In this document: one piece after another, positions 37,160 to 64,000 of the stretch
How the letters are laid out: each line of letters begins with the position of its first letter
Numbering within the stretch: position 1 is the first letter of the stretch
NCBI GenBank assembly: GCA_002269645.1
Contig: NIVC01002544.1
Location: forward strand, 62,001 to 126,000
DNA: 64,000 nt
DNA from: Macrostomum lignano
Taxonomy: Eukaryota
Direction of reading: 5' to 3'
Position numbers and translations under genes: made by a program
Notes under the pieces: generated by a model
Seen by the model: only the letters and a program-made list of their open reading frames with translations
Told to the model about the DNA's origin: nothing
The model's database searches: none

Positions 37160-39382
37160 ATGAAGCTCCAATTAGCAGGACTGATCTTCATTTTTATCTT
37201 GCAAGGATCGGCCGCTGACAATTCTGACACGAGTGAGTAACTGACTTTCTTGGTCTGACAATGAGTCATCGAAATCTCCTGATACGAGTACGAGCGTAGA
37301 TACCGTGGTATCATTGCAGGCGAGTTCCCTATTCGAAGGAGCCGCGTGCTGAGCACCTGGCAGTCGTCTTTTGGCGACGGCCAGACCTGCTTCTTCAACA
37401 GAAGCCAGACAGAGGAGGCCTCAGTTGTCAGTGACAAGCAGAAAAGCTACCGGTTCTTTCACAGCAAAGGCAAGAGCCAAGCTGACGGCGGGTTTCACTG
37501 GTTCGCAGTGCAGCTGAATGAGCCAGTGCTGATCAGCTCTGTGACTGTGAAGGGCAGAGAGGGTGAGTCAGTCACTGTCTTTCATACTCGGCAATTTGCT
37601 GATACTCCTAAATTGGGAAAATTTCACTTCAGACGGAGTTCAATACACCTACAACCGAGTGATCGACATTGAAATTTGGACATCGAGCTGGAGCAGGCGG
37701 GTGTTCTCCGGCGATGAGCACTGCACTTCAAGAAGCATGAGCGGGCAGTTCAATGATTCACTGCCAAAATGGACACTTTGCGGTGTGATTAACAGCTCTC
37801 TGGAAAGCATCACTCGTGGTGAACTTCTCACTGTGTCCTGCGAGAATGGGGTGGGTTCTGTCAATAATGCAGGCTAAATTGCTGCCAAACTGCAACTACA
37901 GTAGCTGAACTGCTTTCAGACATCCAAGCCAGCGCATCACCTGCTGCTAAGGAAGGACGTGTCAAGCAAGGAACCGGACACAGATGACGATGATGTCATG
38001 AGCTTTGCGGATCTCAGACTGCAGGTTAGGCGACCTAAAAACCCGCCAGGTAAACTAATGACTGAAATTATTCTCTCTTGGTTTTAATATAAAATCTCTC
38101 AGTCATTCACAACAGTCTCAGTGATTTCCCAGTCATTCACAACAGTCTTAGTGATTTCTCAGTCATTCACAACAGTCTCAGTGACCTCTCATTCATTCAC
38201 AACAGTCTCAGTGATTTCTCATTCACTCACAACAGTCTCAGTGACCTCTCATTCACTCACAACAGTCTCAATGACCTCCCATTCATTCACAACAGTCTCA
38301 GTGACCTCCCATTCATTCACAACAGTCTCAGTGACCTCCCATTCATTCACAACAGTCTTAGTGACCTCTCATTCACTCACACAACAGTCTCAGTGACCTC
38401 TCATTCACTCACAACAGTCTCAGTGATATCTCATTCATTCACAACAGTCTTAGTGATTTCTCAGCCATTCACAACAGTCTCAGTGACCTCTCATTCATTC
38501 ACAACAGTCTCGGTGACCTCCCATTCATTCACAACAGTCTTAGTGATATCTCATTCACTCACAACAGTCTCAGTGACCTCTCATTCATTCACAACAGTCT
38601 CAGTGACCTCTCATTCACTCTCTCTCGCACCTGCAGCCTCATCGCCGAACTCAGCCAGCAACGCAACCTTCTCAGCAACTGTGTCGGCCCTCGTATTTGT
38701 TTTAACCGCCCTAATCTGCGGCGTCGCTCTGGTCAGTAACTGGTCAATTTGATTTTTTTTTGACAGGTAAGAGAATAACCGAATTTCGAATTCCAGCTGA
38801 AGCTGAAACTGAAGAGCAGACAGTTGCAGTCCTCAAGTCCCGAAGCAAAGCTGAGCAATGTGCCAGATAATCCGGCTGGCGTTGCTAAGGCAGTGCGCAA
38901 GGTGAGAGGCATCTGACCCCTGTACAGAATACTGCTGTGATGGCTCATGCAGGAGCAGGGAAGCTCAGTGGTACACGATTCCCCGCATTCATTTGGGCAT
39001 TGTGCTCAAAAATAGGCCATTGGGTTTTCATGCATGCACAGACTGTACATGCCTGATGATTACAGTCAGGGCCGCTGTACACCCCGCGTGAGCGTGTGTG
39101 TGAGTGCCTGCTCCTGCGAATATTGAAACTTCGAATGCTCAACAACTGATGAGCAATGATGAATTGATGATGAAATCCGAGCCGGCTCCACCGATTTCAG
39201 ACCGATTTCAAACTTACTGATTTCAGACGCTGCGACCGCGCGTCACCGCCCGCAGCTGCGAGCCCGAGTGCAGCTACCTGTCGGTGAATCCCAACGCCGA
39301 GCCCGCCGACAACTCGGACAGGAATTCGGACACCGCAAGCGACTGCACCGTCTATTTGGAAATTGTGGCCGATGCCAACTAG
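37160..39382 (+). CDS. Receptor gene A: signal peptide, F-type-lectin-like domain, short stalk, TM, tail with two Tyr motifs
   Basis: Phase-consistent exons 37160-37232 (MKLQLAGLIFIFIL), 37320-37562, 37633-37850, 37920-38049, 38637-38731 (TM), 38797-38901 (LKLKLKSR), 39227-39382 (CSYLSV...CTVYLEIVADAN stop). Confidence 0.75.
38097..38620. repeat. 30-bp minisatellite in the gene A stalk intron
   Basis: Unit CATTCATTCACAACAGTCTCAGTGACCTCT, about 17 copies; reads HSFTTVSVTS; 2-nt insertion near 38380. Confidence 0.9.
38955..39130 (+). mobile_element. Second SINE-like family, internally deleted copy
   Basis: AGCTCAGTGGTAC head remnant; GCATTCATTTGGGCATTGTGCTCAAAA; TGTACATGCCTGAT...GGCCGCTGTACA. 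Confidence 0.55.
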
Positions 39383-39595
39383 CGAGCTGCTTCAATGATC
39401 ATCAGATTCTTCACCTTGCATGCACTGCATCTGTGTACAGGGCACCTGTTCTTGAGTGCGAGCTGAAATTTGTTTTAATGAACTCAAGCAATTGTTCAGT
39501 TTCAATGGTTAATACTCGTATTCAGCACAAATAAATCTTTGAATTTCAAAATAAACGCTGACCTCTCGATGTCCATTGCCGAGCACCGTCGCTTC

Positions 39596-40660
39596 AATCA
39601 GTCAGTCAGTCAGTCAGTCAGTCAGTCAGTCAGTCAGTCAGTCAGTCAGTCAGTCAGTCAGTCAGTCAGTCAGTCAGTCAGTCAGTCAGTCAGTCAGTCA
39701 GTCAGTCAGTCAGTCAGTCAGTCAGTCAGTCAGTCAGTCAGTCAGTCAGTCAGTCAGTCAGTCAGTCAGTCAGTCAGTCAGTCAGTCAGTCAGTCAGTCA
39801 GTCAGTCAGTCAGTCAGTCAGTCAGTCAGTCAGTCAGTCAGTCAGTCAGTCAGTCAGTCAGTCAGTCAGTCAGTCAGTCAGTCAGTCAGTCAGTCAGTCA
39901 GTCAGTCAGTCAGTCAGTCAGTCAGTCAGTCAGTCAGTCAGTCAGTCAGTCAGTCAGTCAGTCAGTCAGTCAGTCAGTCAGTCAGTCAGTCAGTCAGTCA
40001 GTCAGTCAGTCAGTCAGTCAGTCAGTCAGTCAGTCAGTCAGTCAGTCAGTCAGTCAGTCAGTCAGTCAGTCAGTCAGTCAGTCAGTCAGTCAGTCAGTCA
40101 GTCAGTCAGTCAGTCAGTCAGTCAGTCAGTCAGTCAGTCAGTCAGTCAGTCAGTCAGTCAGTCAGTCAGTCAGTCAGTCAGTCAGTCAGTCAGTCAGTCA
40201 GTCAGTCAGTCAGTCAGTCAGTCAGTCAGTCAGTCAGTCAGTCAGTCAGTCAGTCAGTCAGTCAGTCAGTCAGTCAGTCAGTCAGTCAGTCAGTCAGTCA
40301 GTCAGTCAGTCAGTCAGTCAGTCAGTCAGTCAGTCAGTCAGTCAGTCAGTCAGTCAGTCATAGTCACAGTCAGTCACAGTCACAGTCACAGTCAGTCACA
40401 GTCACAGTCACAGTCACAGTCACAGTCAGTCACAGTCACAGTCACAGTCATAGTCACAGTCACAGTCATAATCACAGTCACAGTCATAGTCACAGTCACA
40501 GTCAGTCACAGTCACAGTCACAGTCAGTCACAGTCACAGTCAATCAGTCACAGTCACAGTCACAGTCACAGTCACAGTCACAGTCACAGTCACAGTCACA
40601 GTCACAGTCACAGTCACAGTCACAGTCACAGTCAGTCACAGTCACAGTCAGTCAGTCAGT
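39596..40660. repeat. (CAGT)n microsatellite followed by (CACAGT)n
   Basis: Pure CAGT to about 40360, then CACAGT-type units. Confidence 0.98.
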
Positions 40661-41034
40661 CACCCAGGTGCGAATTTTATTTATTGTGAATTGAATCAGC
40701 AAATGTTTAAATGCTGGCAACGCGGATAAACTTACTGAATATAATTTCAGCATTTTAGTTATGAATATTAGTAGAAAACATCATTAATACCGAATTAAGT
40801 CAGAAATTAAAAATTGTCAAACAGCATCATTAGTTAAAATTGAAAGCTCCGACACTCTGAATAAACATAAAGGTGAACGCGCAACATTGCACAATGCCAA
40901 CCTGTCCGCTCATTTTGCATCTTGATTAGAGCTGTAACAGTGGGGAGGGCAAAGTGTGAAATAAATTACAGCTGACAGATACACAGCCTGCAGAATACAC
41001 AGCATATCATTGCCGGTGCCTTGGCAAAGTCGTC

Positions 41035-45040
<4,006 letters not shown>

Positions 45041-45252
45041 CATGATCAACTGCTCAAACTATAATCAATATTTTATTATTAGATAGAATTCAATATGTAA
45101 ATTTAGCCATTGCCAGTTCATATTGTAAGAATTTCAGAGTTAAAGCAGTCGTATGCATGAGTGAATTACAGGAATTGAAGTATTTAAATGGCGCTGTAAA
45201 TAAAATGCAAGAGAGTTTAAACTCCAAAGAAGCAACGGCTATTAATGCGTCT

Positions 45253-45462
<210 letters not shown>

Positions 45463-45725
45463 CAAATATTACGAATTATTTACGAAACTTTTCTTAAATT
45501 CAACATTTGAAATGACACACAAACAGGCTATATTTAACACATAAGATAAGATAAACCAAGTGTTGATGGGGGTGATGTTGCTGGCTTATTTATAAAATAC
45601 AAAACTATAATTTTAAATATCACTTGCGAATTTGGGTTTTAAACAGAAACATATTTCCCGAAGTTAAACATTTCAAACTGAAAAAGTTTATATAATCTAC
45701 GGCTCGTATTCAAACATGCCAAGCA

Positions 45726-48700
45726 ATGGAGGTCTGGTTCGCAATGGCAGACCTGTTGCTGCTGCTGCTGCTGCTGCTGCTGGTCCAGACAGCCGCGCAT
45801 GCTGAAGTTGGAGCAAACTGTGAGTTCTGCATGAGCAATGAATGTCAGCATGAATAAAAAGAATGTAAGTGCTCAATCTGTGCTCATTATTGCAGGCGAG
45901 TTCCCCATTCGCAGGAGCCGCGTGCTGAGCTCCTGGCAGTCGTCTTTTGGCGACGGCCAAACTTGCTTTTACAACAGAAGCCACACTGATGAGGAATCCG
46001 TGCTCAAAAACAAAACCTTTAGCTACCGGTTCTTCCACAGCGCTGGCCAGAGCTCAGCAGACGGCGGGTTTCACTGGTTTGCAGTGCAGCTGAATGAGCC
46101 AGTGCTCATCAGATCTGTGACTGTGAAGGGCAGAGAGGGTGAGTCACTCACTCAAATGCGTGCTCCAAGTCTGCTGTCTCTGCTCACGGTGCTCTCGCAT
46201 TCCATATGGTGCATCGAAAGTCTTTAAAAGAGCCAGAGGCATTGTGATCTGGACATCAGACAGCAGCAGCCAGCTGTTCTCAGGAGATCACTGCAGTTCA
46301 AGGAGCATGAGCAGCCAGTTCAATGCATCACTGCATCTCTGGAGACGGTGCGGGCTGACTGAGGGCGGCCCAAGAATTTCCGCTGGTGAAAATTTCACAG
46401 TGGATTGCATGGCTGAGGTGAATACATTTCAAATTTAAACTGCCTGTATATATTTACTAGCAAACTCTATAATGATGGATAATAAATAATCTTATTAAGT
46501 AGAATAAACAACCTGCTGCAGAGTTGTTAGAAAGTTGTTTTTCAATAACAAATTCTCAGGTGAGGTACATTCTTCTTAGAAGAAGCATAACAAACGCGGA
46601 CGTCTCGAGCTCTCTTGACTACATGAGTTTCGCTGACCTCCGGCTTCAAAAGTTGCAGCTGAGTAAGTCACGACTGTGGTGATTGCAGCTGCTCAAATGT
46701 CAGAAATATCGTACCTGAACTGCTGCTACCTGTGAACAATTTTACGTTTTAGGGATCTCAGAAGCTCAACTCGTTGCGGAGAACTCCAGCTTCACAGTGA
46801 ATTGCTCATTGGGCTGCACAGACCAGTCAGATGCTGGCTTAGCAGCTCTGATGCAGCTCTGCTTTCCGAACGGCAGCTGCAATGCATCACGGGAGCTGCG
46901 GGTTCCCAGAGCGCAGCCTCAACACGCTGGAAGCTACACCTGCAGACTGGGCTCTGTGGAGATGCGCACTGCAGTCTCTGTGCTGTGTGAGTGCAGACTT
47001 GGCATGGGCTGGCAAGCCTGTCTCTGTGCTGTGTGAGTGCAGACTTGGCATAAGCTGGCAAGCCTGTCTCTGTGCTGTGTGAGTGCAGACTTGGCATGGG
47101 CTGGCAAGCCTGTCTCTGTGCTGTGTGAGTGCAGACTTGGCATGGGCTGGCAAGCCTGTCTCTGTGCTGTGTGAGTGCAGACTTGGCATGGGCTGGCAAG
47201 CATGTCTCTGTGCTGTGTGAGTGCAGACTTGGCATGGGCTGGCAAGCCTGTCTCTGTGCTGTGTGAGTGCAGACTTGGCATGGGCTGGCAAGCCTGTCTC
47301 TGTGCTGTGTGAGTGCAGACTTGGCATGGGCTGGCAAGCATGTCTCTGTGCTGTGTGAGTGCAGACTTGGCATAAGCTGGCAAGCATGTCTCTGTGCTGT
47401 GTGAGTGCAGACTTGGCATAAGCTGGCAAGCATGTCTCTGTGCTGTGTGAGTGCAGACTTGGCATAAGCTGGCAAGCCTGTCTCTGTGCTGTGAGTGCGT
47501 GACTGTGTGACTTGGGATGGGCTGTCAGGCATGTCACTTTCATTTTCTACTGACACATTTCTGTCAGATCCAAATCGATGCCTTTAATTTAATGATGGTG
47601 TCAAGTAATCCTGAGAAAAGCATATCTTGTCAATCTTTTATTCGTTATTGATAAATATGACGATTTTTATTTTGAATTCTAATTCGGTAACTTACTGACT
47701 TTTGCAGCAGTCTCCCCGCGTCAAGTTGTGATGAAGGGCTCCAAGCTCACTATGAGCTGCTCGCTGCACTGCAACGGCTCAGATCTGTGCTCAAACTCAA
47801 GCGGACTGCATCTCTGCTTGCTGAACGGCAGCTGCACAGGCAGTCACAGGATGGCCGTTGCTGTGGCGCAGCCTCTGCACTCTGGAAACTACACCTGCAG
47901 ACTGGGCTCTGTGGAGTCTCGAACTTCGGTCACCGTGCTGTGTGAGCTCTTTAAATTCTCTTCAAAAGTTTCTTATTACAGACAGGATATCACAGGTGGC
48001 TCAACATGCACTCAGATTTAATATTTTTCAGACCCCCATCGAGAGTGTCAGTGTCAGTGCTGAATTTCAACAGCTGTCAGAACCTGTCAGATGTCATCGT
48101 GCAGTTTACATCAACAGAGTCTGAGCCAATCTCCGAGCACAGATGCGGCGCAGAAGCTGCTGGAATTGAAATGCAGAATCTCACACTCATTCACCAGGTT
48201 GGTCTTAAATTCGTCAATCCAAAATTAACCTTTATTTGCTCAATTGACTGTGACGGGTGCGGGCTTGCAGAGCTCTAGCGAGAACGGAACCATCAGCCAG
48301 TGGGTCCCGGACTCGAGCCTGCAAAGCGGCGGTGTCATCTCCATAAAGTGCATCGCTCAGCAGCAGCTCCCGCAGCAGCTCGGCTTTCGGGTATTGAGTC
48401 AGGAGTCTGTGGAAGCCATCTGCACAGAACCGGAGATTTTGAGTTCCCTGTCCATTGCGATTGCCGCTGCCACAATTGGCGGTGCAGTCGCCCTGTCTGC
48501 TGTGTTGGTTGCGGTTGCGGCCGTGGTGAGAAACTGTTGGACACTTCGACCTTTATTCTTCCCTTAACTGCATGATTCACTGCTCAATGCTATTCATGTT
48601 GCAGCGGATTTCCAGGCGGTCTCGTTCCAGAAGTTCGCCATCTGCCAGGCTGAAGATCTACTCAATTGTGCAGGTCAACTCCATGATGATCCCGTACGAT

Positions 48701-51696
48701 GCGCAGCCGACAGATGCTGTGAGTGCCATGCGTTTTATTTTCTTTTTAAGAAATATTTGCAACCAGTCATTTAAAAAACTATTGAACTCAAATTTTGAAT
48801 TATTCCTGTTTGTGAGTTACACGAACTGTTACACAGTGTGAACAAAATTTTTATGGATATTTTTTGTTTTACATAAAAATTCTGCTAAATTTCTATCTCT
48901 ACTTTCAGTAACTGATACCTTATATCTAAAATGAGTTCCGAAAGATATAAACAAGTAACCGGACTTCATTGGGGGCAGAGAAGCTCAGCAGTAAACGCTG
49001 TTGGATCTATGAAGCTTGAACTTTTGTTGTTTGATTTGATTTTGATTTTCAAGTTGGAACTGCTCTCGTCGGCATTCCGAGTGTCATTAGTCAAGTTGGA
49101 ACTGCTCTCGTCGGCATTCCGAGTGTCAATAATCAAGTTGGAACTGCTCTCGTCGGCATTCCGAGTGTCATTAATCAAGTTGGAACTGCTCTCGTCGGCA
49201 TTCCGAGTGTCATTAGTCAAGTTGGAACTGCTCTCGTCGGCATTCCGAGTGTCATTAATCAAGTTGGAACTGCTCTCGTCGGCATTCCGAGTGTCATTAG
49301 TCAAGTTGGAACTGCTCTCGTCGGCATTCCGAGTGTCATTAGTCAAGTTGGAACTGCTCTCGTCGGCATTCCGAGTGTCATTAATCAAGTTGGAACTGCT
49401 CTCGTCGGCATTCCGAGTGTCAATAATCAAGTTGGAACTGCTCTCGTCGGCATTCCGAGTGTCATTAGTCAAGTTGGAACTGCTCTCGTCGGCATTCCGA
49501 GTGTCATTAGTCAAGTTGGAACTGCTCTCGTCGGCATTCCGAGTGTCATTAGTCAAGTTGGAACTGCTCTCGTCGGCATTACGAGTGTCATTAGTCAAGT
49601 TGGAACTGCTCTCGTCGGCATTCCGAGTGTCATTAGTCAAGTTGGAACTGCTCTCGTCGGCATTCCGAGTGTCATTAGTCAAGTTGGAACTGCTCTCGTC
49701 GGCATTCCGAGTGTCATTAGTCAAGTTGGAACTGCTCTCGTCGGCATTCCGAGTGTCATTAGTCAAGTTGGAACTGCTCTCGTCGGCATTCCGAGTGTCA
49801 ATAATCAAGTTGGAACTGCTCTCGTCGGCATTCCGAGTGTCATTAGTCAAGTTGGAACTGCTCTCGTCGGCATTCCGAGTGTCATTAGTCAAGTAGGAAC
49901 TGCTCTCGTCGGCATTCCGAGTGTCATTAGTCAAGTTGGAACTGCTCTCGTCGGCATTCCGAGTGTCATTAGTCAAGTTGGAACTGCTCTCGTCGGCATT
50001 CCGAGTGTCATTAGTCAAGTTGGAACTGCTCTCGTCGGCATTCCGAGTGTCATTAGTCAAGTTGGAACTGCTCTCGTCGGCATTCCGAGTGTCATTAGTC
50101 AAGTTGGAACTGCTCTCGTCGGCATTCCGAGTGTCATTAGTCAAGTTGGAACTGCTCTCGTCGGCATTCCGAGTGTCATTAGTCAAGTTGGAACTGCTCT
50201 CGTCGGCATTACGAGTGTCATTAGTCAAGTTGGAACTGCTCTCGTCGGCATTCCGAGTGTCATTAGTCAAGTTGGAACTGCTCTCGTCGGCATTCCGAGT
50301 GTCATTAGTCAAGTTGGAACTGCTCTCGTCGGCATTCCGAGTGTCATTAGTCAAGTTGGAACTGCTCTCGTTGGCATTCCGAGTGTCATTAGTCAAGTTG
50401 GAACTGCTCTCGTCGGCATTCCGAGTGTCAATAGTCAAGTTGGAACTGGCCTCGTGGGCATTCCAGGCGTCACGTCCGGTAGTAGATTAGTCCAGTTGTT
50501 GACTGGGCCACCCGCAGCTTGGGCTAGCCCCACCCCCAGCTTTGATGACACTTGCTGCGTTGGATATGGTCATCATGCGCACTTCATGAACTTCCGATCT
50601 GTTCCACAGCTTCAACTGCAGCGCCAGCGTACTCCCATGAGTGCAGCACTGCCTGTACTCAAGCACTCCTGGGCGGAGTTTGACTCCCCTCAACTCAACT
50701 CAAGAGGATGATGATGCTCAGGTTTCTCAGGCGCGGTTGAATCACCGTTCATAGCATATTTGACAAAGTCGTCATGAGTGAGAAGGAAGCCAGCGTTCTT
50801 CGTATCACGGCTTAGGACTTGAACGAATTGAAGCGCGGTCAGTGTTTGCTGTCGTACGCGTGACTTTGATTTAGCGGGTTGTCTTTGTTACAGCATCCGA
50901 GTACGCGAACATGCCAAATCGGTTCTGCACAATGTCCACGGCGAAGTTTGCTACTCCGTCCAAAAATAGCACCTCCGTTCTTGATGAGGCCAGTCACATA
51001 GAGTCAATAGTGTGTTTGGAGTCGACATTGGTTATGCCGATGACTTCGATCCGACAATGTCCACTGTCCAGAGTTCGTCCGAATCTCTCAGTTCCTTTTC
51101 AACTTTTTAATTTCTCATTGCTCTCTACGCTCGGGTTTGCTTGTACAGCAAGTATACCTAAGGCAAAAAATAATCAAACAACAAAAGTTCATGCTCGGCA
51201 GATTCAACAAACGCGTCCGACCCTCGCGACACGACCCCTTGCTTGGTGCGCGGCTGCATTCATTTAGGGCTTGTGCTCAAAATTGGCCAGGGGCTCAGGC
51301 TCGATTCACAGCCATGAGGGCCAACCCCCCCCCCCGGCACAGAGAGTGTACATGCCTGACGATTAGAAAGTCAGGCCGCTGTACACCCTGTGTGAGCGTG
51401 TGAGGGCGTGCCTGCATACAGTATTAAAGTAGGTGCTCATTAGTCAGTGGAATGGGCAGAATTGCCTTAACGCTGGTTGTGGGACGGTGGGTGTTTCTAC
51501 CCGGACCTACACAAGCACCGCACTGAAACATTTGCAGGCCTGCTGTTGCACGGAGGAGCTGCCAGAGTGCAGCTACTTAACAATAATCCCACCTGGAGGT
51601 CAGGCAGAGGCCACCACAGCCGATTTGCAGCACTCTGCCAGCGAATGCACCGAGTTTATTGAGATTCTGGCTGATGGAGAGATTGAAGACTCATAA
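45726..51696 (+). CDS. Receptor gene C: SP, F-type-lectin-like domain, 2 Ig, membrane-proximal domain, TM, Tyr-motif tail
   Basis: Exons 45726-45819 (poly-Leu signal peptide), 45896-46138, 46206 or 46221-46417, 46560-46662, Ig 46753-46986, 47708-47941, 48016-48197, TM 48271-48525, 48605-48718, 51538-51696 (CSYLTI...CTEFIEILADG). Two acceptors differ from those of the paralogues. Confidence 0.65.
46974..47496 (+). repeat. 46-bp tandem duplication of an exon end plus splice donor, 11 copies
   Basis: Unit GTCTCTGTGCTGT|GTGAGTGCAGACTTGGCATGGGCTGGCAAGCCT begins inside the Ig exon. Confidence 0.92.
49049..50455. repeat. 42-bp minisatellite, about 33 copies
   Basis: Unit TCAAGTTGGAACTGCTCTCGTCGGCATTCCGAGTGTCATTAG. 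Confidence 0.97.
51255..51520 (+). mobile_element. Second SINE-like family, copy with conserved central hairpin
   Basis: Shares TTCATTT(A/G)GG..., GTGTACATGCCTGAC...GGCCGCTGTACAC and GTGTGAG.GTGTG blocks with copies at about 38955-39130 (+), 54460-54630 (-) and 60055-60395 (+); tRNA-like A/B boxes in the 54.6 and 60.06 kb heads. Confidence 0.65.
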
Positions 51697-52093: not shown

Positions 52094-52690
<597 letters not shown>

Positions 52691-52993: not shown

Positions 52994-55900
52994 ATGGCAG
53001 CATTTGAACTCATGGTGGTTGTATTGTTTCTGGCACTGCACCGAACAGGAGCGACCGAAGACTGTGAGTTCGATGACGTGTTTTCAAAAATTTCAAAATA
53101 TTTTTTTCCGCAGAAGGGGGAGGGCGCAGGAGGGCATGTCCACCCAGTAAAAGCTATGGGGGGCATGCTAATGCTTTGCCCCTCCCGCGACACTTGGTGA
53201 CCCGTCATGGAAATCAAAAATTTTGTTTTAGGGTGTTAAAATATAGCGCCTGCAGCGCCAAAATGAGGCTCTCGGCGCCAAAATGAGACCCTCGGCGCCA
53301 AAATGAGACCCTCGGCGCCAAAATGGGTGCCTGTCTGCGGCGCCAAAATGAGTGCCTACGGCGGAAAACAGGGTGCCTGCGGCGCCAAAATGAGTGCCTG
53401 CGGTGCCAAAATGAGTGCCTGCGGTGCCAAAATGAGTGCCCGCGGCGCCAAAATGAGTGCCCGCGGCGCCAAAATGAGTGTCCGCGGCGCCAAAATGAGT
53501 GCCCGCGGCGCCAAAATGAGTGCTCGCGGCGCCAAAATGAGTGCCTGCGGCGCCAAAATGAATGCTAACAGCACGTATTTCCATAATAATGTTGGAATGT
53601 ATTCTTATGTTTTAGAAATTTAGTCATGGGAGCTATTGACTTACCATAAAAACCATGGCGACGCCCCTGTGCAGGTGAGCTCCCGATTCGCAGGAGCCGC
53701 GTGCTGAGCACCTGGCAGTCGTCGTTTGGCGACGGTCCGACCTGCTTCTACAACAGAAATCAAACTGATGAAGATGCAGCAATGCAGGAAACAAAAGCTA
53801 CCTGCAAATTCTTTCACAGCGCTGACAAGAGCTCAGCAGACGGCGGGTTTCACTGGTTCGCTGTGCAGCTGAATGAGACAGTGCTCATCAGATCTGTGAC
53901 TGTGAAGGCTCGGCAAGGTAAAATGATAGGATTGATAATTTCGTATTTGTGAAGTGAAGATTTAGTATTTACTGTTTGTCGCATCGAATCTTCAGTCACA
54001 ATTTCGCACCTGTCTGACCACCTGCGGGCGAGCAGCATTGAAATATTCACATCCGGAAACAGCAGCGAGATGTTCTCCGGTGTTGACCACTGCATTTCAA
54101 ACAGCATGAGCAGGCAGTTCAACGACTCGCGTGAGCAGTGGAAATTGTGCGGCAATACAAAAAGCAAGCAGAAAGGGAACATCGCTGCTGGGGAAAATAT
54201 CACTGTGAGCTGTGTGGCAGAGGTGAGTGCTGAGTCAAACTCTCGTGAGTCATTTTAATTTTTCTGCAATGCAAAATGAAGCTTATGCATCAGTTTTAAC
54301 CAAAAAATTTCAGGTTCGACATCTGCTGCTGCGGAGACCCCAGTCGGCTGAGGGGCAGAACTACATGAACTTCGCCGACTTGAGACTTCAGACTGTGTCG
54401 CTGAGTAGGTTGATGGATGAAGATGAATGGAGATGAAGATGGATGAATTTTTGATTTTGACTTTGACTTTCCAATCGTCAGGCATGTACACTCTCTGTTC
54501 CTTGGGGGGGTGGTACTCATGGGTTGCGAATCTGAAGTCAGAAGCCTCAAATGAAAGTGGCAGCGCACGGAATCGAACCAGGGGTCGCGGCGCGAGAGGC
54601 AGATGCCTTTACCGCTGAGCTCCTGGGGCTCTCTACGAGCGCATGCTATTTAACACCCAGAACTAATTGTCCTTGATCCACAACAAGCCTGAAGATACAC
54701 CTCGGAGTTGATTATCAGCTTTATATTTCTTTTATACACCCAGTGGGCAGCTAATTATGATTTGCAATTAGGCCATATTTTATATTGAAAAGTCACCAAA
54801 ATGCTGACTGTATTTTTCAGAATTAGAGAGTCCTCAAGTGGTTGCTGTGGGCTCCAATTTCACGGTGAGCTGCTGGCTGCAGCAGTGCAACGGCTCAAAG
54901 CTGAGTACGAACTCAAGCGAGCTGCAGCTCTGCATTCCAAATGGAACCTGCGTCTCAAATTTGAAATATTTTATTGCCGATGTGCAGCCTGAGCACTCGG
55001 GCAGCTACTCCTGCAAGTTCGGCTCGGTTTCCAAGTCAACTGAAGTAGCTGTTCTGGGTAAGAGCGCTTTAACTCAGCACTCTGTGTGACTCATGGATGA
55101 AGGAATCTTACATGGATGATGGACTCCTTCATCCATGGTGTGACCGCAATAAGAGCGCATTTCAATTGACCTGCACCTGCAGCATAGGCTCGATAAATAA
55201 ATCGTCTTCAATCGCAGTCCTATGTGAGAGACTGCTCTATGCTCACATTCTTTCCAACATGCAATTTAAACCTGAGCTTGGATAAAGACGTATGAGCATG
55301 CCTGCATAAGCATGAGCAAAACCGACTCCAGAGCCATCTCAGTTTTCGATACGAGCTACTCCACTTTTAAGCTAGCGCCAGATACTCCACTTCTGAATTG
55401 CAGCCTCATCTCCAGACCAAGTGGTGGCGGACAGCGGCAACATTTCCATCAGCTGCTCCCTGAACTTGAACTTGTCGGATTCAAACATGAAGTCAAGCCG
55501 GCTGCAGCTGTGCACTCCAAGCGGGGACTGCCGACACACCCAGCAGATCCACATTGCTGATGTGAAACCTCGGCATTCTGGAATTTATGCTTGCAAATTC
55601 GGCAATGCGTCGAAGTCACTTCAAGTCGCTGTTCTGAGTGAGTCATTGATTAGTTGCCTTAAAATGCTTACACTAAAGATGGCGAGAATGCATTCCGATA
55701 GGACGGAGATTTTATTCCACCAAAGAATGTAGGGATTTCAATAGAATAGAAATAGGCTCAGCTTGACTACATTTATGAATCTTAACTTTATTAAATTTCC
55801 AGCTTCATCTCCAAGCCAGAATGTTTCCGAAAACGCAAGCTTCACCGTGAGCTGCTCGCTGCACTGCGGAAATGCATCGCAATGCTCAGATCGCTTATTG

Positions 55901-58900
55901 GGTGGCGACCTCCGGCTGTGCCCTCCGAATGGGAGCTGCCTGACAAATTCAAGTCTGCAAGTGGACAGAGCTCAGGCAATGCACTCCGGAGTTTATACTT
56001 GCAGATATGACGTCATTGAGATCGAGACAGAAGTCTTTGTTCTTTGTAAGTAGAAAGTAGGCTGCCTTCAGAATCTTGTTGCTCAGTGTTGCTCAGTGTT
56101 GCTCAATGCTGCTCAGTGTTGCTCAGCGTTGCTCAATGTTGCTCAATGTTGCTCAGTGTTGTTCAATGTTGCTCAGTGTTGCTCAGTGTTGCTTAATGTT
56201 GCTCAATGTTGCTCAGTGTTGCTCAGTGTTGCTCAGTGTTGCTCAGTGTTGCTCAGTGTTGCTCAGTGTTGCTCAGTGTTGCTTAATGTTGCTCAATGTT
56301 GCTCAGTGTTGCTCAGTGTTGCTCAGTGTTGCTCAGTGTTGCTCAATGTTGCTCAATGTTGCTCAGTGTAGCTCAATGTTGCTCAGTGTTGCTCAATGTT
56401 GCTCAGTGTTGCTCAGTGTTGCTCAATGTTGCTCAATGTTGCTCAGTGTTGCTCAGTGTTGCTTAATGTTGCTCGGTGTTGCTCAGTGTTGCTCAGTGTT
56501 GCTCAGTGTTGCTCAGTGTTGCTCAGTGTTGCTCAGTGTTGCTCAGTGTTGCTCAATGCTGCTCAGTGTTGCTCAGTGTTGCTCAGTGTTGCTCAGTGTT
56601 GCTCAGTGTTGCTCAATGCTGCTCAGTGTTTCTCAATGTTGCTCAATGCTGCTCAGTGTTGCTCAGTGTTGCTCAATGTTGCTCAGTGTTGCTCAGTGTT
56701 GCTCAGTGTTGCTCAATGTTGCTCAGTGTTGCTCAGTGTTGCTCAGTGTTGCTCAGTGTTGCTCAGTGTTGCTCAGTGTTGCTCAATGCTGCTCAGTGTT
56801 GCTCAGTGTTGCTCAGTGTTGCTCAATGTTGCTCAGTGTTGCTCAATTTCACAATCGATTAACTCACCTTCATCAGGCGAGTTCCCAGTTCGGCGAAGTC
56901 GCATTCTGAGTTCGTGGCAGTCATCATTCGACGATGGTCCGACGTGTTTCCACAGCAGGAATCAGGCAGACGAAGCCTCCATCATCAGCAACAGGCAAAC
57001 CAGCTACAAGTTCTTCCACAGCGCCAACAGAAGCCAAGCAGACGGCGGGTTTCACTGGTTCGCCGTGCAGCTGAATGAGCCAGTGATCATCAGATCTGTG
57101 ACTGTGAAGGGCAGAGAGGGTGAGTGAGGACAACTTATTTATACGCTTCTTCTGTAAGGACTGATTCTCCTGTTCTGAAGATTCCACTGTACAGTAATAC
57201 GTTTCAACGACATCATAAGTAACTCCTCATCTTATTTTCAGACGGTGTGACAAGTACTTACAATCGAGCAAAGGACATTGAAATATTTACCTCCAACTCT
57301 AGCAGCTCCCTGATCCATGGGGATAACTGCAACACCAAAAAAATGAGCTTTCAGTTTAAAAATTCGATGCACCATTGGAGGCCATGCGGCGTGACTGATA
57401 AGCAGGGAGACGTCGCAGATGGGGAAATGTTTCACGTGAAATGCGTTGCTGAGGTAAAAATTTGGAAAAAAAAATTTGGAAATTCTACAGTGATTTGAGT
57501 ACCATTGTCTTTCCAAGCAACCTATGAGCATTTAAACTGCAGGTCCGAAGTCTACTCCTGCGAAGAAACGTGTCTAAAGACACGGACGGGCACATGAGCT
57601 TTGCTGACCTGAGGCTTCAGACTGGGAAAATCAGTAAGATTTTTGAGCTGTCATGAGTTGTGTCCAAGTCCTGGTGTGTGTGCTAAGTTGAAGCGCTAGC
57701 AGTACATGCAAAATGACTGAAGTTCGTCTCAAAAGTGTCTCAAATCATTGCATTTCAGAAGTCGAGAGCCCCAAGGCGGTGCTGCAGCACTCAGCATTCT
57801 CAGTGCGCTGCCTGTTGGACTGCAACGGTCGAACCGAATACTCACCGAAGTTGGAGCTCTGCCTTCCAAACGGAAGCTGCGTTGGACAAGCTGAAGCCGT
57901 CATTCACAGGGCGCAGCTGTGGCACCATGGAAACTACACGTGCAAGTTGGGCAGCTCGCAGAGCTCAAAGTTCTTAACGGTGTTTTGTAAGTTTTCATCA
58001 ATAGAAACATGACTTGGTGTTGCATCAGTACTGAATCATTCAAAAGATTCCATAAGTTGATTCTGGACTCTGGATGACAAATCGATTGCTTAGCATTTGA
58101 TAATTAGCGTTGCACTGGGACTCCTCTCGTACACAGATTGGAAGAAAATTCTCGCAAGGAGTCGTGCCAGCTTAAGGCTGGCTGATGGCAGTAGAAGCCA
58201 TCAATGGCAGCAGATCAGGCCGCATTTCAGGTGACTTCCCTATCCGGAGGAGCCGCATATCGAGTGCTTGGCAGTCGTCTGCATTCGAAGACACCTGTTT
58301 TAATAAAAGAACTGCTGAAGCGGAAGTGAACTTGGAACCATGGAAGTATTTTCACAGTAGTCGCAGTAGCTCAGCAGACGGCGGGTTTCACTGGTTCGCA
58401 GTGAAGCTGGATGAGCCAGTGCTCGTCAGATCGGTCACTGTGAAGAGCAGAAACAGTGAGTGACTTTTCACTTCTTCATGAGTATTAATCATACCTAAAT
58501 CTGAGTCCGAATCGTTTTTGTCTGGAGTCTATTAGGTTAAAAAACTTCTCAATAAGGTGTTGTCCTGTCCGGCGCAATGGAAAAGCGATGCCAGGTTTTT
58601 ATTAGTTTTTAGGTCCGTTGCAAATTTATGTTGCTCGTACTAGTGAAGTAGCCTCTTCAAATTCAAGAAAGCAGAATCAAAGTTGGTCTGCAGAGTAAAT
58701 TAAATGCTTTTTTACCCAGCATCACTTTTGCAAACACACCAAATCCATGAGCAGTCGCGGTTTAATTCCAGACGCAGACTACACGAGGGCAAAGGGGATC
58801 GAGATCTTTACGTCAAACAGCAGCGATGAAATATTTTCCGGAAACCACTGCGCCTCGAAGAGCATGAGTGCTCAGTTCAATTGCTCATTTCATCTCTGGA

Positions 58901-61900
58901 GTCTGTGTGGGCAGACAGAGAAGCAAGGAGCAATTCAACCTGGCGAAAATTTTACTGTGAGCTGCGTTGCCGAAGTGAGTGACAGCGTTGCGAAGAGATT
59001 TATCGATTGCGAGTATTATCAACTCGCAAGACTTACATGTAGAATTGTCAGAGCTGTTCAGCACCCATCAAGACCATGAATAGTGGCGGGGTACGAGGTC
59101 AACGCGAACTACCAAGAAACTTTCCAGTGGTGGATGGAGACAATGGAGTGGCCTAGAGAGTCTGGGGGAGATGGGGATAGCTACAAGAGTCAGTCAGAGT
59201 TAGACTACATCCACAGGTGCTTCGCTCGTTTGGCCCATCATGAAATTGGAGTTTACAAGAATCTGCTCACAATGGGTGCTGATTCTCAGTTGAGTACCTC
59301 TACTCCAAAGTTCGCCTACTAAACGACTCATAGCAGCTGGGCAGGTGGGAAGGCAGAAGCCATTTCTTCCGACCAGTGAGATTGACCTGAGCACTCTACA
59401 AGCTTGAGCAGGAGGGTTGGTAGCTACTCCATCTCCCTCCCTGCAGAAGAAAGCGCAGTTGTCTGCATTGCCGACCGTAATGGGATTTGGCGGATCATTC
59501 TGACTCAATGAAATTCCATAATGGGACTCGGTAATGAGGTTCTGGAATTAAAAAATCGATGTGGTCTAGGATCTGCTCTAAAAAATAGCGACTTCCGGCC
59601 CATGGCTGACCATCACTGTTCCGACTTACCTTTTCAGGTCTGGCAGCTGCTTCTGAAAAGAAGTGCCTACATTGAGAACAATGAGTACATGAACTTCATG
59701 GACCTAACACTCCAAACTGTGCCGATTAGTAAGTTAACCATGATTTCTATGCTTCACGATTCACTTATACATTAAAAAATGTTCTAAAACTTTTAGAAGT
59801 GCACAGTCCTCAGTTGGTGGCGCAGAACTCCAGCTTCACTGTGCGCTGCGCCATCAAATGCGATGAAGACGGAGCTGATGTGGCCTCCAACTCGTCTGAG
59901 CTGCGGCTCTGCTCTCCGAACGGAAGCTGCTCAGAAGGATCAACAGTTCGAATCGACAGTGCTCAGCCCCTGCATTCTGGGAAATATACTTGCAAACTGG
60001 GCTCGTTCGAGAGGTCAGCAACAGTCGCAGTGCTGTGTGAGTTCATCTAGTTCGACTGACATCAGTGGTACAGCGCGGTGCTCTGATGTGCCAGTGGCCC
60101 AGGCTCGATTCCAAGTGCAGTCACACTAATTTGAGGCTAAATTGGAATCTCGGCTTGGCTCTGCTCGTGCAATTAACGCAGTGAAGTGTACATGCCTAAC
60201 GATAAATAAAGTTGGGGCCGCTGTACACTCCTGTGTGAGTGTGTGCCTATGCGTATGACTGCGTACGTATCTGCGCGCTTCTGTGCCTGCTCAGGGGAGT
60301 CGGCGGAATGGGCAGTGATGCCTCTCGCCGGTTGTGTGACAATGTCGCTTAAAGTGCGCCAGGGTGCACAGAGCCCCTGTCTCTAACAATAATAACTTAG
60401 TTTGGCTAAAAAGTAGTAATATCCTTGACTATCCGTTATTAAATTCCAAATAGCCATTGTGCCAAGTGGTAAAGCGTCTGACTCTTGCATCAAAGTCCCT
60501 GGTTCGATTCCGTGGATATTTTTGGGGTTAGGATATTTTCAGCAGGACGAACGAAAAAGAGCAAAACTATAATTTCAAGTGCCGATGATGATTTCAGCAT
60601 CCTCAGAACACCAGCTGGTGGCAGAGAACTCAAACTTTTCCGTGAGCTGCTCGCTGCACTGCAACGGCTCTGAGCAGTGCCCCGACTCCAGCAAGCTGCA
60701 GCTCTGCTTGCCAAACGGCACCTGCATTCGGGAAAGCCAGCTCAATGTTGCCGGAGCGACTCCGCTGCACTCTGGAGTTTACAGGTGCAGAGCCGGGCCT
60801 GCCAATGCGTCAACTCTCGTGACTGTGCTGGGTGAGTCCCGTTTACCCTGGCCTTGCCTCCTAGCTGATAATATGTCTTCATTTAGTTTTCCAACGTGTG
60901 TCTTTCAATTTTGCTGATGTCAGCCTCTCTCGAACTCCAGCATCTTCACCTCATCAAGTGGTGGCCGAAAACTCGAGCCTGATATTGAACTGCTCGCTGC
61001 ATTGTGGGCTCGAAGCAGTCGAATGCGAAGACTCAGCTGCTCATGGAAAAATGAAAATTTGCCGTCCCAACAACGGCAGTTGCAGCTCAGATCGATCGTT
61101 TCAAATTTCTGCAGCAACTCCGGCTCAAGCTGGAACCTACGCGTGCAAGATCGGCTCGGCTGAGGCACCGACCTCAGTAGCTGTGCTCTGTGAGTTTGCT
61201 GTCACTTCTCGTGACTTTTGGAATGTCATGCTCAATGGTTGTCACGTACATTAGAGGCCGTTAGTTTTCCTAAGCATCACTTAGCGCTTGAGATTTTTTC
61301 ATTCTAGTGGCACTCACTGGATAGTAGGAAATAAAGTTCTACGAGGGGATGTCTGGAAAAGTTCTGACACTTTTAATCCCAGAGCAGAAACGGAACCAGC
61401 TGAAATTTTTATGGCGGCACATTTTGGAGGCCACTCCATCGAAAGGTTATGCTTGAAAAAGCACCACAATGCCACTGATGGTCTTACAAGAACTGAAAGT
61501 CGCAACAAATATAAAGAGATGGTTTGTCTTTGAAAAACCAATTTTGGTTCTCATATTCTCATTATATTATCAATATGCGCTTGTTCGAACCGGTGCACAT
61601 CCTCGTTAATTCAGCTGTGCATTTATAACAATCGATCGATCAATATTTCAATTCGGAATGCCGCAAAATTCTGTTCACTGCGGCCTATCTGGTTCAAATT
61701 TCCAGTCAGCTCAAAGTCGCTTCAAAGTCCGTCAGTCAAGCGGTGCCAGGACTCCGCAATAGCACCGACGTAGTAGCCCGAATATTCGATGTAGTCGTTC
61801 AGGCCGTCGAACGTAGGCGAGCAAGAGACGTAGCTCTCGGCCACGGCGTCATCTGGTTGGCCAGTCAGCCACAGGCTGCCGTCGATGCTGGAGTTGCAGC

Positions 61901-64000
61901 TGGTCCAGAACCAGCTTCCGCTCGGCTCCTCGCTGCCGGGCAGCTGCCAGCCACCGAGCATCACGCTGGTGTCGGTTGTTAGGCGCCAAACTCCGGATAT
62001 GTTGCAGCTCCTCCAGGTCGCTTACGTCAGCCATGATGACGAGTCCAGGCTCCGCATCGATGTCAGTCTTGGCTACGAGCCAGTCGTGAATTCCAGAGTA
62101 CATCTTGTACTTTGTGCCGCACAGGTCGTCAGAGAATCCGGCAGGGCACAGAGCACCGGGCGGCAGTCCCGGCTGCTGCCTCACGAACACCGGCGCCCTG
62201 CGAGTGCAGCCGCAGTCTCTCACGCGCTTGCTGCACCTGTTGAACACGAACAGCTGGCACGGACCGTCGGCCAGGCTGAACGCCTGACAGTCGAGCTTTG
62301 AGTCGCACAGGCTGGCGCAGTCAATCTTTGATGTGGCATCGCTGCGAGTCTGCACAAACTCTGGCCTGATGCACTGAAACTTGTCGAGCTCCTGGTATCG
62401 AGCTGCCGAGGCCGCAGTCAGCAGCGCAGCCGCTGCAACAAGGCCCAGAAGATGCGGCATCCCTGGTTAAGGCTATGCGAAGAAATTCGCCTGACTTCGA
62501 GGCTTAAGTAGGCAAAAATTTCCGCCAGTTGAGTTCTCCGTTCGATACTTTCTTAGAAATGCTTTGATCCAGGCGGCACTTCCCTTTGAGTCAAGACAGA
62601 GAAGAGAGCTGCATCCATTAGCATTCGAATTGCTGGATTGTCCTCTCTTGGCCATCCATCCATTGTATTGAAAGCAATGCTTTTAGGCATGGTGAGGAAC
62701 AGTCAGCGATTGGAGTGGCTTTTATGCTGTTACTCGCGTGAACTGCTCACTAAATCGGTAATTCAATATCGATTATTTTAAAAGCATCCTTATTATTGGT
62801 CTAATGGTTGATATGGTTCGATTGGTTTCAAAAGACATTTGAGGCTTTCTGAATCGACAAGTAGCCAAGAGCACATGATGCAGCTTTGAGCAATGCACCA
62901 GTCTTGACGATCGGCAATGGTCTCTCTTACTGGTTACCTAACAGTATCATTGGGCCATCCATACACTACATGACGTACGACTCGCAAAGTACTCGAAAAA
63001 TCGAGCTTAGCGCAGTTGTTAGTAATGCTAATATTATTAATAGATTACACCTACCCTAATGGGCAGATGAAGGCTGCGTACGGCTGTTCAGTCCAAGGAT
63101 TGGGGGTGGGTGGCCACACACCCTCAATTCCTATCAAGACACTAGCTAATGCTGGTACCCATTTTACAGCTGGGTGAACTGAAGCAATGCAGCGTTGGGT
63201 GTCTTGTTCAAGGACACAGTTTGGTCTTATGAGACAAAAAATGTCAGAACTTGCCGGACATCACTCATATTTCAATAGAGGGCTCTTATCTGCTCAAAAA
63301 GGTAATTCTATGAGAAATTTTTTCAGAGAAATTACCTACGGGTTGGAAAGTCACAATACAAGCATTATTAGTCCAAGACTGATGATGACACAGGCACAGG
63401 TTCAACCCTAAAGCCTGGAAACCAGGTCATTTATTAAAACTTAATGACTTCTTGGAAAAACTTGTCGAATGCCTAAACATTTCAGCGATTACTTCAAATA
63501 AATCCGTGGCTGTCAACTCAAGCTTCTCCGTTCGGTGCATTCGGCACTGCGACAGAACTTGTCCTGTGCTGAATTCGAGCAAACTGCAGCTCTGCTTGCC
63601 AAACGGCACCTGCTCAGCCAATGACGAACTGCATATCAGCAGTGCCCAGCCTCATGAGCACTCTGGAAACTACACTTGCCAAATGGATGCTGTTCGAACA
63701 TCAGCCTCTGTTACCGTACTTTGTAAGTCGACTGTTATTGAGAAATTTCGCCTTCAGATGGAACAGAGACACGTTGAAAAGTCCCTCTCTCTCTGAACAC
63801 ACTGTAGACCCGCCATCAAGCGTATCAGTCTCTGCCCCGAACTCAAGCAGCTGCGACAGTCCGTCCGACATCGTCGTGCACTTTACATCCTCCGCATCTC
63901 AGCCTGCACCCGAGCACAGTTGCAGTGCTGCTGCTGACATGGCTGCAATGGAAAACTTCACCCGCCTTTCAGAAACGAGTTTTACTAAAGTCAATAACGG
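52994..64000 (+). CDS. Receptor gene D (3'-truncated by the window): SP, Lec, Ig x3, Lec, Ig, Lec, Ig x4, membrane-proximal domain
   Basis: Exons 52994-53063, 53675-53917, 53996-54222, 54314-54404, 54821-55057, 55404-55637, 55803-56045, 56877-57119, 57242-57453, 57543-57633, 57759-57986, 58231-58455, 58772-58974, 59638-59728, 59797-60036, 60598-60831, 60941-61189, 63486-63722, 63808 onward. All phases are compatible and no further signal-peptide exon was found between modules. Confidence 0.7.
53270..53562. repeat. 21-bp minisatellite (gene D intron 1)
   Basis: Unit GCGGCGCCAAAATGAGTGCC(C/T), about 13 copies. Confidence 0.9.
54460..54630 (-). mobile_element. Second SINE-like family, 3'-truncated copy
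   Basis: Minus strand GGAGCTCAGCGGTAAAGGC...GGTTCGATTCCG...TTCATTTGAGGCT...GAGAGTGTACATGCCTGACGATT. Confidence 0.6.
55150..55225 (+). pseudogene. Relic 3' half of an Ig exon inside a gene D intron
   Basis: Reads TCTCSIGSINKSSSIAVL then T|GTGAGA, matching the family Ig exon end; the 5' half is absent. Confidence 0.5.
56085..56846. repeat. 10-bp minisatellite, about 76 copies
   Basis: Unit GCTCA(G/A)TGTT. Confidence 0.97.
60055..60395 (+). mobile_element. Second SINE-like family, near full-length copy
   Basis: CATCAGTGGTACAGCG...GGCTCGATTCC head; central hairpin at 60186-60228; tail ending AACAATAATAAC. Confidence 0.6.
61722..62460 (-). pseudogene. Intronless secreted PAN/apple plus C-type lectin gene, antisense and nested in a gene D intron; one frameshift (pseudogene or sequence error)
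   Basis: Signal peptide MPHLLGLVAAAALLTAASA; PAN-like CASLCDS...CQAFS....CQL; CTL CPAGF...KYK...W...EE...I; after a +1 shift near 61975, VMLGG...W.W...W..GQPDD...GLND. Confidence 0.7.
63023..63218 (-). mobile_element. 5'-truncated copy of the CORE-like SINE
   Basis: Homologous to 44430-44620 (TACACC..CCCTAAT, GAAGGCTG.GTACGGCTGTTCAGT, CCCATTTTA.CAGCTG.GTGAACTGAAGCAAT, CAAGGACAC). Confidence 0.75.

Follow-up and report, generated by a model that had tools for sequence, protein, structure and literature searches.

F-type lectins are defined by a fucose motif, HX24RXDX4(R/K), and a cation motif, h2DGx (PMC5712786), and two reviews of these lectins give CTLD, pentraxin, CCP, transmembrane (TM) and FA58C as the eukaryotic partners of the F-type lectin domain (FTLD). 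A 64,000-nt stretch of the genome of Macrostomum lignano, a free-living flatworm (Platyhelminthes, Macrostomorpha), covering positions 62,001 to 126,000 of contig NIVC01002544.1 and hereafter called the window, contains a real cluster of uncharacterised, Macrostomum-restricted genes for membrane proteins in which a lectin-like head related to the FTLD is combined with immunoglobulin (Ig) domains. The combination of FTLD, Ig domain and TM helix is described neither in these two reviews nor in a survey of lophotrochozoan lectins (PMC8878817), a scope outside which the FTLD survey of Bishnoi 2015 falls, and a literature search found no paper joining Macrostomum with F-type lectins; the first-pass annotation, which was made from the letters of the window alone, had likewise not recognised the combination as a described family. 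The innate recognition receptors of flatworms are poorly known, and M. lignano is tractable by RNA interference and transgenesis.

Among described receptors, the vertebrate Siglecs (I-type lectins) resemble this family in their membrane-distal glycan-binding head (predicted for the flatworm proteins), a variable number of C2 Ig domains, a single TM helix, a short tail in which about 20-25 residues separate two Tyr-based motifs, of which the distal is of the immunoreceptor tyrosine-based switch motif (ITSM) type (TxYxxI in gene A of the cluster), and a tandem gene cluster with variable Ig number. However, Siglecs bind sialic acid through an essential Arg in a V-set Ig domain that forms their head, whereas the head of the flatworm family is an F-type-lectin-like jelly roll; no sequence homology links the two, and the proximal tail motif of the family is no canonical immunoreceptor tyrosine-based inhibitory motif (ITIM). 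The resemblance is an architectural analogy only, and the family is neither a Siglec nor a selectin. The VIgL proteins (FREPs, CREPs and GREPs; QREPs and HREPs of gastropods) also form lineage-specific multigene families that join the Ig superfamily (IgSF) to lectins, and are thought to act in non-self recognition (PMC8878817). They are secreted, with an N-terminal IgSF part and a C-terminal lectin of the fibrinogen, C-type, galectin, C1q or H-type, not F-type (PMC8878817), whereas the flatworm proteins reverse this order, with the lectin N-terminal, and carry the TM helix and cytoplasmic tail that VIgL proteins lack together with any cytoplasmic motifs. Drosophila Furrowed/CG9095 and the selectins are likewise type I proteins with an N-terminal lectin (including an FTLD in Furrowed), repeat spacers, a TM helix and a short tail, but their spacers are CCP/sushi repeats, they possess a C-type lectin domain, and they are encoded by single conserved genes and have other tail motifs.

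A tandem cluster of four genes with six lectin-like heads

The window is eukaryotic sequence rich in micro- and minisatellites. When it was searched by tblastn with the exon peptides of the first-pass annotation, a lectin module encoded by three exons was recovered in six copies on the + strand, from 37.3 to 59.7 kb (module starts at 37322, 41231, 45898, 53677, 56879 and 58233), along with 13 Ig-like exons in the cluster and a partial minus-strand copy near 29.3 kb. Splice donors, acceptors and intron phases are conserved from copy to copy: the signal peptide (SP) exon is followed by a phase 1 intron, lectin exon 1 by phase 1, lectin exon 2 by phase 0 and lectin exon 3 by phase 1, and each Ig exon is of the 1-1 type. 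Full gene models were assembled by hand from the window sequence, and gave four paralogous genes in tandem on the + strand (37160-64000), every one with an uninterrupted open reading frame (ORF) and GT-AG at all introns, and with a single terminal stop in genes A, B and C. Six lectin domains are thus shared among four genes, one each in A, B and C and three in the fourth gene, whose modules 1, 2 and 3 are called copies D, E and F. The spliced lectin-domain query is 100% identical to the UniRef entry A0A1I8JLC6 of M. lignano.

These models bear out much of what had been read from the letters: four same-strand paralogues with a three-exon head, exons that can be spliced in silico into continuous ORFs with conserved phases and GT-AG borders, and Ig counts of 0, 3, 2 and at least 8, for which the models hold 0, 3, 2 and 8. 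The first-pass annotation did not mention that the fourth gene has three lectin modules, and it overlooked a two-exon membrane-proximal domain in B, C and the fourth gene. The TM helix and Tyr-motif tail claimed for every gene are found in A, B and C, whereas those of the fourth gene lie past the window end; within the tails, the first Tyr motif is present in all three genes, but the second has Phe in place of Tyr in B and C. As a whole, this structural reading was largely right, while the functional one (putative sugar binding, Tyr signalling and immunity, with rapid diversification) is plausible in part, and wrong on diversification so far as the paralogues show.

Gene A (37160..39382, +; 7 exons, 339 aa, no Ig domain) is a complete ORF, and its ATG lies exactly at position 37160, the start of the region. 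An SP exon (37160-37232) is followed by the lectin-like domain exons (37320-37562, 37633-37850 and 37920-38049), a TM exon assigned by hydropathy (38637-38731) and two tail exons (38797-38901 and 39227-39382), and the tail ends with ECSYLSV and, before the stop, DCTVYLEIVADAN. The UniRef paralogue P0005 has the same architecture. Intron 4 of gene A, which separates the lectin domain from the TM exon, embeds 17 copies of a 30-bp tandem repeat (38096..38617, +), the 3′ part of which has no stop in the TM exon's frame and reads as a Ser/Thr-rich decapeptide, TSHSFTTVSV; the frame shifts at ~38393, in-phase CAG acceptors occur in each unit, and P0005 is without this segment. Should splicing choose an internal acceptor, the repeat may encode an optional stalk, mucin-like and rich in Ser/Thr; otherwise it may be just intron.

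Gene B (41035..45040, +; 11 exons, 650 aa) carries three Ig domains. Its SP exon (41035-41098), lectin-like domain exons (41229-41471, 41555-41754 and 41824-41911) and Ig exons (41997-42230, 42309-42539 and 42618-42851) are followed by two exons for a membrane-proximal Ig-like domain and a TM helix assigned by hydropathy (42937-43103 and 43794-44048), and by two tail exons (44719-44820 and 44906-45040) that encode DCSYLTV and, at the stop, DCTEFLKIVADGD.

Gene C (45726..51696, +; 10 exons, 604 aa as modelled) comprises an SP, the lectin-like domain, two Ig domains, the membrane-proximal domain, a TM helix by hydropathy and a tail with the motifs KIYSIV, IPYDAQ and ECSYLTI, then ECTEFIEILADGEIEDS and the stop. 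It bears two lesions: lectin exon 2 is without its canonical acceptor, AG having become AT at 46204-46205, and one nucleotide is deleted from a C-run at ~48031, at the start of the membrane-proximal exon. Alternative in-phase acceptors at 46221 and 48016 restore the frame, so that gene C may be either alive or a pseudogene. A 46-bp repeat in 11 copies begins at, and repeats, the donor of the first Ig exon of this gene.

The fourth gene, DEF (52994..64000, +), runs off the window, with 19 exons seen, at least 1263 aa and 8 Ig domains. Its SP exon (52994-53063) is followed by lectin module 1 (D; 53675-53917, 53996-54222 and 54314-54404) and three Ig exons (54821-55057, 55404-55637 and 55803-56045), by module 2 (E; 56877-57119, 57242-57453 and 57543-57633) and a single Ig exon (57759-57986), and by module 3 (F; 58231-58455, 58772-58974 and 59638-59728) and four Ig exons (59797-60036, 60598-60831, 60941-61189 and 63486-63722), and the window ends within the membrane-proximal domain, after its first exon (63808-64000), so that position 64000 is reached before the TM helix and tail. 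The 19 exons form one continuous ORF, and each of the 18 introns is GT-AG. Neither an SP or hydrophobic leader nor a TM exon was found between the lectin modules, and the introns before modules 2 and 3 (831 bp and 244 bp) hold nothing but a 10-bp satellite or a little unique sequence. Because no SP or TM exon intervenes and the junctions are in phase, the locus is best modelled as one multi-headed gene; a division of the locus into three genes, one each for D, E and F, was ruled out on these same two grounds and by the single ORF of 1263 codons.

Introns of the fourth gene contain two further features. A degenerate Ig exon outside the model (55175..55228, +) retains only its 3′ half (...C.IGS....IAVLC). 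Inside a 2.3-kb intron, two overlapping minus-strand ORFs (61722-62460) encode an SP and a Cys-rich protein; by eye (WxW, QPD), these ORFs at ~61.7-62.5 kb had been taken for PAN plus C-type lectin, but Pfam gave a weak PAN match only, with no match to Lectin_C.

The head is a remote relative of F-type lectins

Matches of the single-copy heads to the Pfam families F5_F8_type_C and F5_F8_type_C_2 all fell below the gathering threshold. At whole-protein cut-offs, the three-module protein of the fourth gene scored 44.2 bits against F5_F8_type_C_2 (cut-off 27.8) and 38.6 bits against F5_F8_type_C (cut-off 28.2), and the true F-type lectins AAA, MsaFBP32 and SpX-1, used as controls, match exactly the same two families. 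Single-sequence phmmer and a 7-sequence profile gave no match in the PDB. A profile of 15 diverse family members, searched against all 177,635 distinct PDB sequences, gave six matches, all of them genuine FTLDs: 3cqo (E = 1.1e-4), 1k12 (1e-3), 3le0/4gwi (4e-3), 2j1r and 2j22. F-type lectins (eel AAA, 1K12; striped bass MsaFBP32, 3CQO; S. pneumoniae SpX; S. mitis lectinolysin) are therefore the only PDB matches of the family profile; copies C and F were left out of some of the remote database searches. Supportively, hhalign of the family against an alignment of five solved FTLDs gave E = 7.6e-5 in local and 8.7e-6 in global mode (136 columns), and placed QSS on QSS, HWFAVQL on PWWRVDL, R79/D81/R87 of the family on R79/D81/R86 of AAA, and C128/C144 on the FTLD disulfide pair C108/C124.

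An AlphaFold2 model of the head (predicted local distance difference test, pLDDT, 68; predicted template modelling score, pTM, 0.72; residues 6-40 unreliable) gave 69 Foldseek matches at E <= 1e-3, and those listed were all galactose-binding-domain-like, including the galactose oxidase N-domain and SpX-3 (2j22) and, at probability 1.0, CBM32, the F-lectin 3cqo (rank 6, E = 6.4e-5) and discoidin. The predicted fold thus agrees with the beta-barrel that had been expected, a galactose-binding-domain jelly roll with an F-lectin among its matches, although the fold class alone does not distinguish an FTLD from CBM32 or discoidin. Because the PDB profile, hhalign, the whole-protein Pfam scores and the AlphaFold2/Foldseek results converge on it, the FTLD is the specific tie of the head, which by these comparisons is a remote yet specific relative of that domain, beyond the generic discoidin fold.

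The heads and the F-type lectins have in common the jelly-roll class, the QSS start, a W-[WF]-x-V-[DQ]-L strand, the R-x-D...R residues, one in-register Cys pair and a final hydrophobic-acidic strand, and the fourth gene is multi-headed, as eukaryotic F-type lectins are. Both Arg of R-x-D...R are present in all six window copies and the Asp in four of them, where the motif reads R-E-D-X5-7-R (A, B, C and E), and these residues align exactly with those by which AAA and MsaFBP32 bind fucose. Variation within the head, in sequence and in length, is greatest in the loop that leads from R-x-D to the second Arg, and a His ahead of the first Arg is invariant. The heads differ from F-type lectins in being only ~13-20% identical to them, in lacking the vicinal Cys-Cys of FTLDs, in two long loop insertions, in being encoded by three exons, and in their fusion with Ig domains, a TM helix and tails that carry Tyr motifs. 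Hence the claim that the head is an F-type lectin with its H...RxD...R sugar-binding triad held for homology, through profile, hhalign and fold, but not for the strict spacing of the triad, in which the position of the His is ambiguous.

Ig domains, membrane-proximal domain and Tyr-motif tails

The Ig domains read in the first-pass annotation passed the Pfam thresholds: Ig_2 was matched at 43.1 bits in gene B and 80.1 bits in the fourth gene (cut-off 27), and Ig_3, ig, V-set and I-set were matched as well. The 13 Ig exons align with conserved ...V.C... and ...Y.C... motifs, which supply the Cys pair of strands B and F, at a mean identity of 41%. The membrane-proximal domain, which is not in gene A, was modelled by AlphaFold2 as a seven-strand sandwich (pLDDT 82.6) whose best, though weak, Foldseek matches are Ig-like (SYG-2 D4, butyrophilin and EpoR), and from this model it appears to be a divergent Ig-like domain.

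By hydropathy, A, B and C have one TM helix each. Their cytoplasmic tails, of 70-100 residues, carry two conserved motifs ~25 residues apart, with the consensus [D/E]-C-S-Y-L-[S/T]-[V/I] and then [D/E]-C-T-x-[Y/F]-[L/I]-x-I-[V/L]-A-D. The pairs are ECSYLSV and DCTVYLEIVADAN in A, DCSYLTV and DCTEFLKIVADGD in B, and ECSYLTI and ECTEFIEILADG in C, which has KIYSIV and IPYDAQ in addition. The core of the distal motif is T-V-Y-L-E-I in A, T-E-F-L-K-I in B and T-E-F-I-E-I in C. The ITIM consensus is (I/V/L/S)xYxx(I/V/L) and the ITSM consensus TxYxx(V/I); the distal motif of gene A fits the ITSM pattern as TxYxxI. The Tyr motifs YLSV, YLTV, YLTI, YSIV and YLEI also fit the YxxPhi sorting signal. A distant member, P0030, repeats the distal motif as DVTEYLDIV, and its cluster representative, P0014, is 37% identical to the lectin domain of gene B. 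Other family members end in a different Tyr-rich sequence, DYENSEYKLENAAGVYID.

Restricted distribution, purifying selection and an invariant exon tract

An exhaustive HMMER search of 1.84 billion representative proteins recovered 23 relatives, and all those with a named source are from M. lignano; a second, word-index search with the family alignment added one further protein only. The family is essentially restricted to M. lignano / Macrostomum, and is uncharacterised. Its UniProt names are automatic and inconsistent, and database models of the relatives are fragmentary or mis-fused (e.g. P0001 and P0028). A comparison with Mlig-sperm1, a flatworm-specific family described in the literature, showed no relationship. 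The only relative from outside Macrostomum, P0016, comes from JGI metagenome 3300040801 (locus L001, positions 284-919 of a 1598-bp contig); its ORF is continuous, with no intron between the parts matching exons 1 and 2.

Selection on the six heads was evaluated pairwise by the Nei-Gojobori ratio of nonsynonymous to synonymous substitution rates (dN/dS) and in 15-codon windows. The dN/dS values were 0.13-0.39 at dS of 0.8-2.6, which is saturated, and no 15-codon window had pN/pS >1. These values suggest that the paralogues are old and under purifying selection, which in turn argues that the heads are functional. The first-pass annotation had called the family rapidly diversifying; at the level of paralogues this is contradicted by the same values, all windows being <1.

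At the 3′ end of lectin exon 1, a tract of 72-80 nt is nearly identical in its nucleotides in all seven copies, including a dead one. Its codons read ADGGFHWFAVQLNEPVLIxSVTVK, and it lies at 37481-37552, 41390-41461, 46057-46128, 53836-53907, 57038-57109 and 58374-58445 on the + strand, and at ~29245-29330 on the - strand in the decayed copy. The pooled pS of the tract is 0.13 vs ~0.7 elsewhere in the domain, and a 23-mer is identical in six of the seven copies. RNA secondary structure was rejected as an explanation, folding Z-scores being -0.8 to +1.1 in five of six copies; short-tract gene conversion or selection at the nucleotide level could account for the tract. The decayed seventh copy (28900..29480, -) consists of a lectin exon 1 with frameshifts and stops plus a fragment of an Ig exon, with lectin exons 2 and 3 absent.

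Possible function of the family

The genes are, in our assessment, probably tandem genes for type I membrane glycoproteins whose lectin-like heads, held on Ig stalks, would bind sugars that are read out through Tyr-motif tails. From N- to C-terminus, the architecture consists of the SP, one (A, B and C) or three (fourth gene) lectin-like jelly rolls, 0-8 short C2-like Ig domains acting as spacers, the Ig-like membrane-proximal domain (not in A), the TM helix and the tail. The membrane-distal head would bind a terminal sugar on glycoconjugates, with contacts made by the conserved Arg-x-Asp...Arg and probably by the invariant His, and fine specificity would be set by the hypervariable loop from the Asp to the second Arg. 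Reach and valency would depend on how many Ig spacers there are and, for the fourth gene, on its three heads as well, and clustering by ligand would be read out by the Tyr motifs, either as phosphotyrosine/SH2 signalling or as YxxPhi-type endocytosis. Sugar binding and its specificity, phosphorylation and a role in immunity or allorecognition are what we infer from the gene products. If true, a membrane-anchored F-type-lectin head with Ig stalk and Tyr motifs would add a domain combination not seen before among F-type lectins, and would be a further case, beside FREP-like proteins, Siglecs and selectins, of the repeated assembly of lectin, spacer and signalling tail; the Tyr/Phe alternation in a conserved tail motif would provide a handle on ITSM-type signalling in a platyhelminth. 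Should the heads bind no sugar, the family would merely be a lineage-specific IgSF expansion of modest interest.

Several observations weigh against sugar-reading receptors of this kind. The strict spacing HX24RXDX4(R/K) is departed from, with 31 residues instead of 24 between His and Arg and X5-7 instead of X4 between Asp and Arg, and in gap-free alignments the His of the family falls five residues N-terminal of FTLD His52, so that an indel is needed to bring the two together. The Asp of R-x-D is missing from D (R-Q-V) and F (R-N-N). The h2DGx Ca motif is absent, the aligned region being a variable loop; FGDG[PQ] right after QSS in four copies, and FDDGP in a fifth, have the wrong flanks and position for it, and the stretch is absent from F and distant members. 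The AlphaFold2 model of the head is only moderate (pLDDT 68). In the tails, the proximal motif is no canonical ITIM because it has Cys, not I/V/L/S, at -2, and in B and C the second Tyr is replaced by Phe. Gene C may be a pseudogene, and the treatment of the fourth locus as a single gene is based on splice-phase logic.

It is possible, though distinctly less probable, that the proteins are not immune but serve in cell-cell or gamete/tissue recognition or adhesion, like IgCAMs or bindins, with the head binding an endogenous glycan on another cell or gamete. F-type lectin repeats do act as gamete-recognition 'bindins' in oysters (F-type lectin reviews), Ig-stalked TM proteins are typical adhesion molecules, the membrane-proximal domain has its best structural match in SYG-2, which serves in synaptic adhesion, and nothing within the locus points to immunity. 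However, the short, conserved Tyr-motif tails resemble those of receptors more than the cytoskeleton-linked tails of cell adhesion molecules, and gene A has no stalk at all.

About equally doubtful is the proposal that the head keeps the F-type/discoidin fold but has lost sugar binding, and takes a protein or lipid ligand, as is the case for discoidin/FA58C domains and some degenerate FTLDs. The basic triad has been lost from FTLDs such as Drosophila CG9095 and certain oyster isoforms (PMC5712786), and the unmatched fucose and Ca motifs, the missing vicinal Cys-Cys, the sub-threshold per-domain Pfam scores and the spread of top Foldseek matches over the whole galactose-binding-domain superfamily all agree with such a loss. 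Retention of Arg79, Asp81 and Arg87 in four of six copies, and of both Arg in all six, in alignment with the fucose-binding residues, argues the other way, as does the PDB profile, which matches only sugar-binding FTLDs.

The tails bear on a somewhat less likely alternative, that of endocytic or scavenger lectin receptors in which the Tyr motifs would be YxxPhi signals for clathrin adaptors and not phosphotyrosine motifs. All five Tyr motifs satisfy YxxPhi, and no first motif fits an ITIM at -2. Yet the change of Tyr to Phe in the second motif of B and C, with the flanks conserved, is unexpected for a mu2-binding signal, and the ~25-residue spacing and the T at -2 (TVYLEI in A and TEYLDI in P0030) are the pattern of an ITSM.

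A more elaborate form of the sugar-reading receptor, which we consider rather improbable, would be a Siglec-like glycan checkpoint built independently in a flatworm, in which ITSM-like tails with Tyr (A) and Phe (B/C) form signalling-competent and signalling-dead pairs, self or microbial glycans are read, activation is tuned via SH2 phosphatases, and the invariant exon-1 tract anchors gene conversion that shuffles the flanking variable loops. Least credible of all is an array of largely non-functional, decaying duplicates in a repeat-rich region whose models are in-silico splicing artefacts, which would fit the two gene C lesions, the dead 29-kb copy, the degenerate 55.2-kb Ig exon, the satellite-filled introns and the fragmentary or mis-fused models of relatives (P0001 and P0028), but neither the long, uninterrupted ORFs of A (339 codons, 7 exons), B (650 codons, 11 exons) and the fourth gene (at least 1263 codons, 19 exons), in which every intron is GT-AG, nor dN/dS well <1 with saturated dS.

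Neighbouring sequence and repeats

Large micro- and minisatellites occupy intergenic and intronic positions at 39594-40662, 43125-43746, 45253-45462, 46974-47493, 49049-50464, 52094-52690, 53248-53565 and 56077-56845. Satellite units include (TCAG)n, (GATA)n, (TAC)70, 42-bp x34, (GCCT)149, 21-bp x15 and 10-bp x77, and several satellites yield long spurious ORFs. Sequences that are tRNA-like and resemble short interspersed nuclear elements lie in introns at ~44460-44700 and ~54540-54640, and were not called as tRNAs. A short interspersed repeat with the core GTACATGCCTGAYGATTA ... GGCCGCTGTACAC ... GTGAGCGTGTG is found in introns of A and C and at two sites of the fourth gene (39045-39062, 51348-51365 and 60188-60205, +; 54472-54489, -).

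Directly upstream of the receptor cluster lies a split gene with a protein tyrosine kinase domain (PK_Tyr_Ser-Thr; HCDLAARN), the N- and C-lobe ORFs of which (20157-20507 and 27715-28296, +) are ~7 kb apart. Within the gap lies a DIRS-like retroelement (20828-24531) that encodes a reverse transcriptase, a tyrosine recombinase and, in a gag-like ORF, a SAP domain. A functional link between the kinase and the receptor cluster would be speculation. Three tRNA-Gly(GCC) genes were identified by ARAGORN and Rfam at 451-521, 1713-1783 and 14245-14315 on the + strand.

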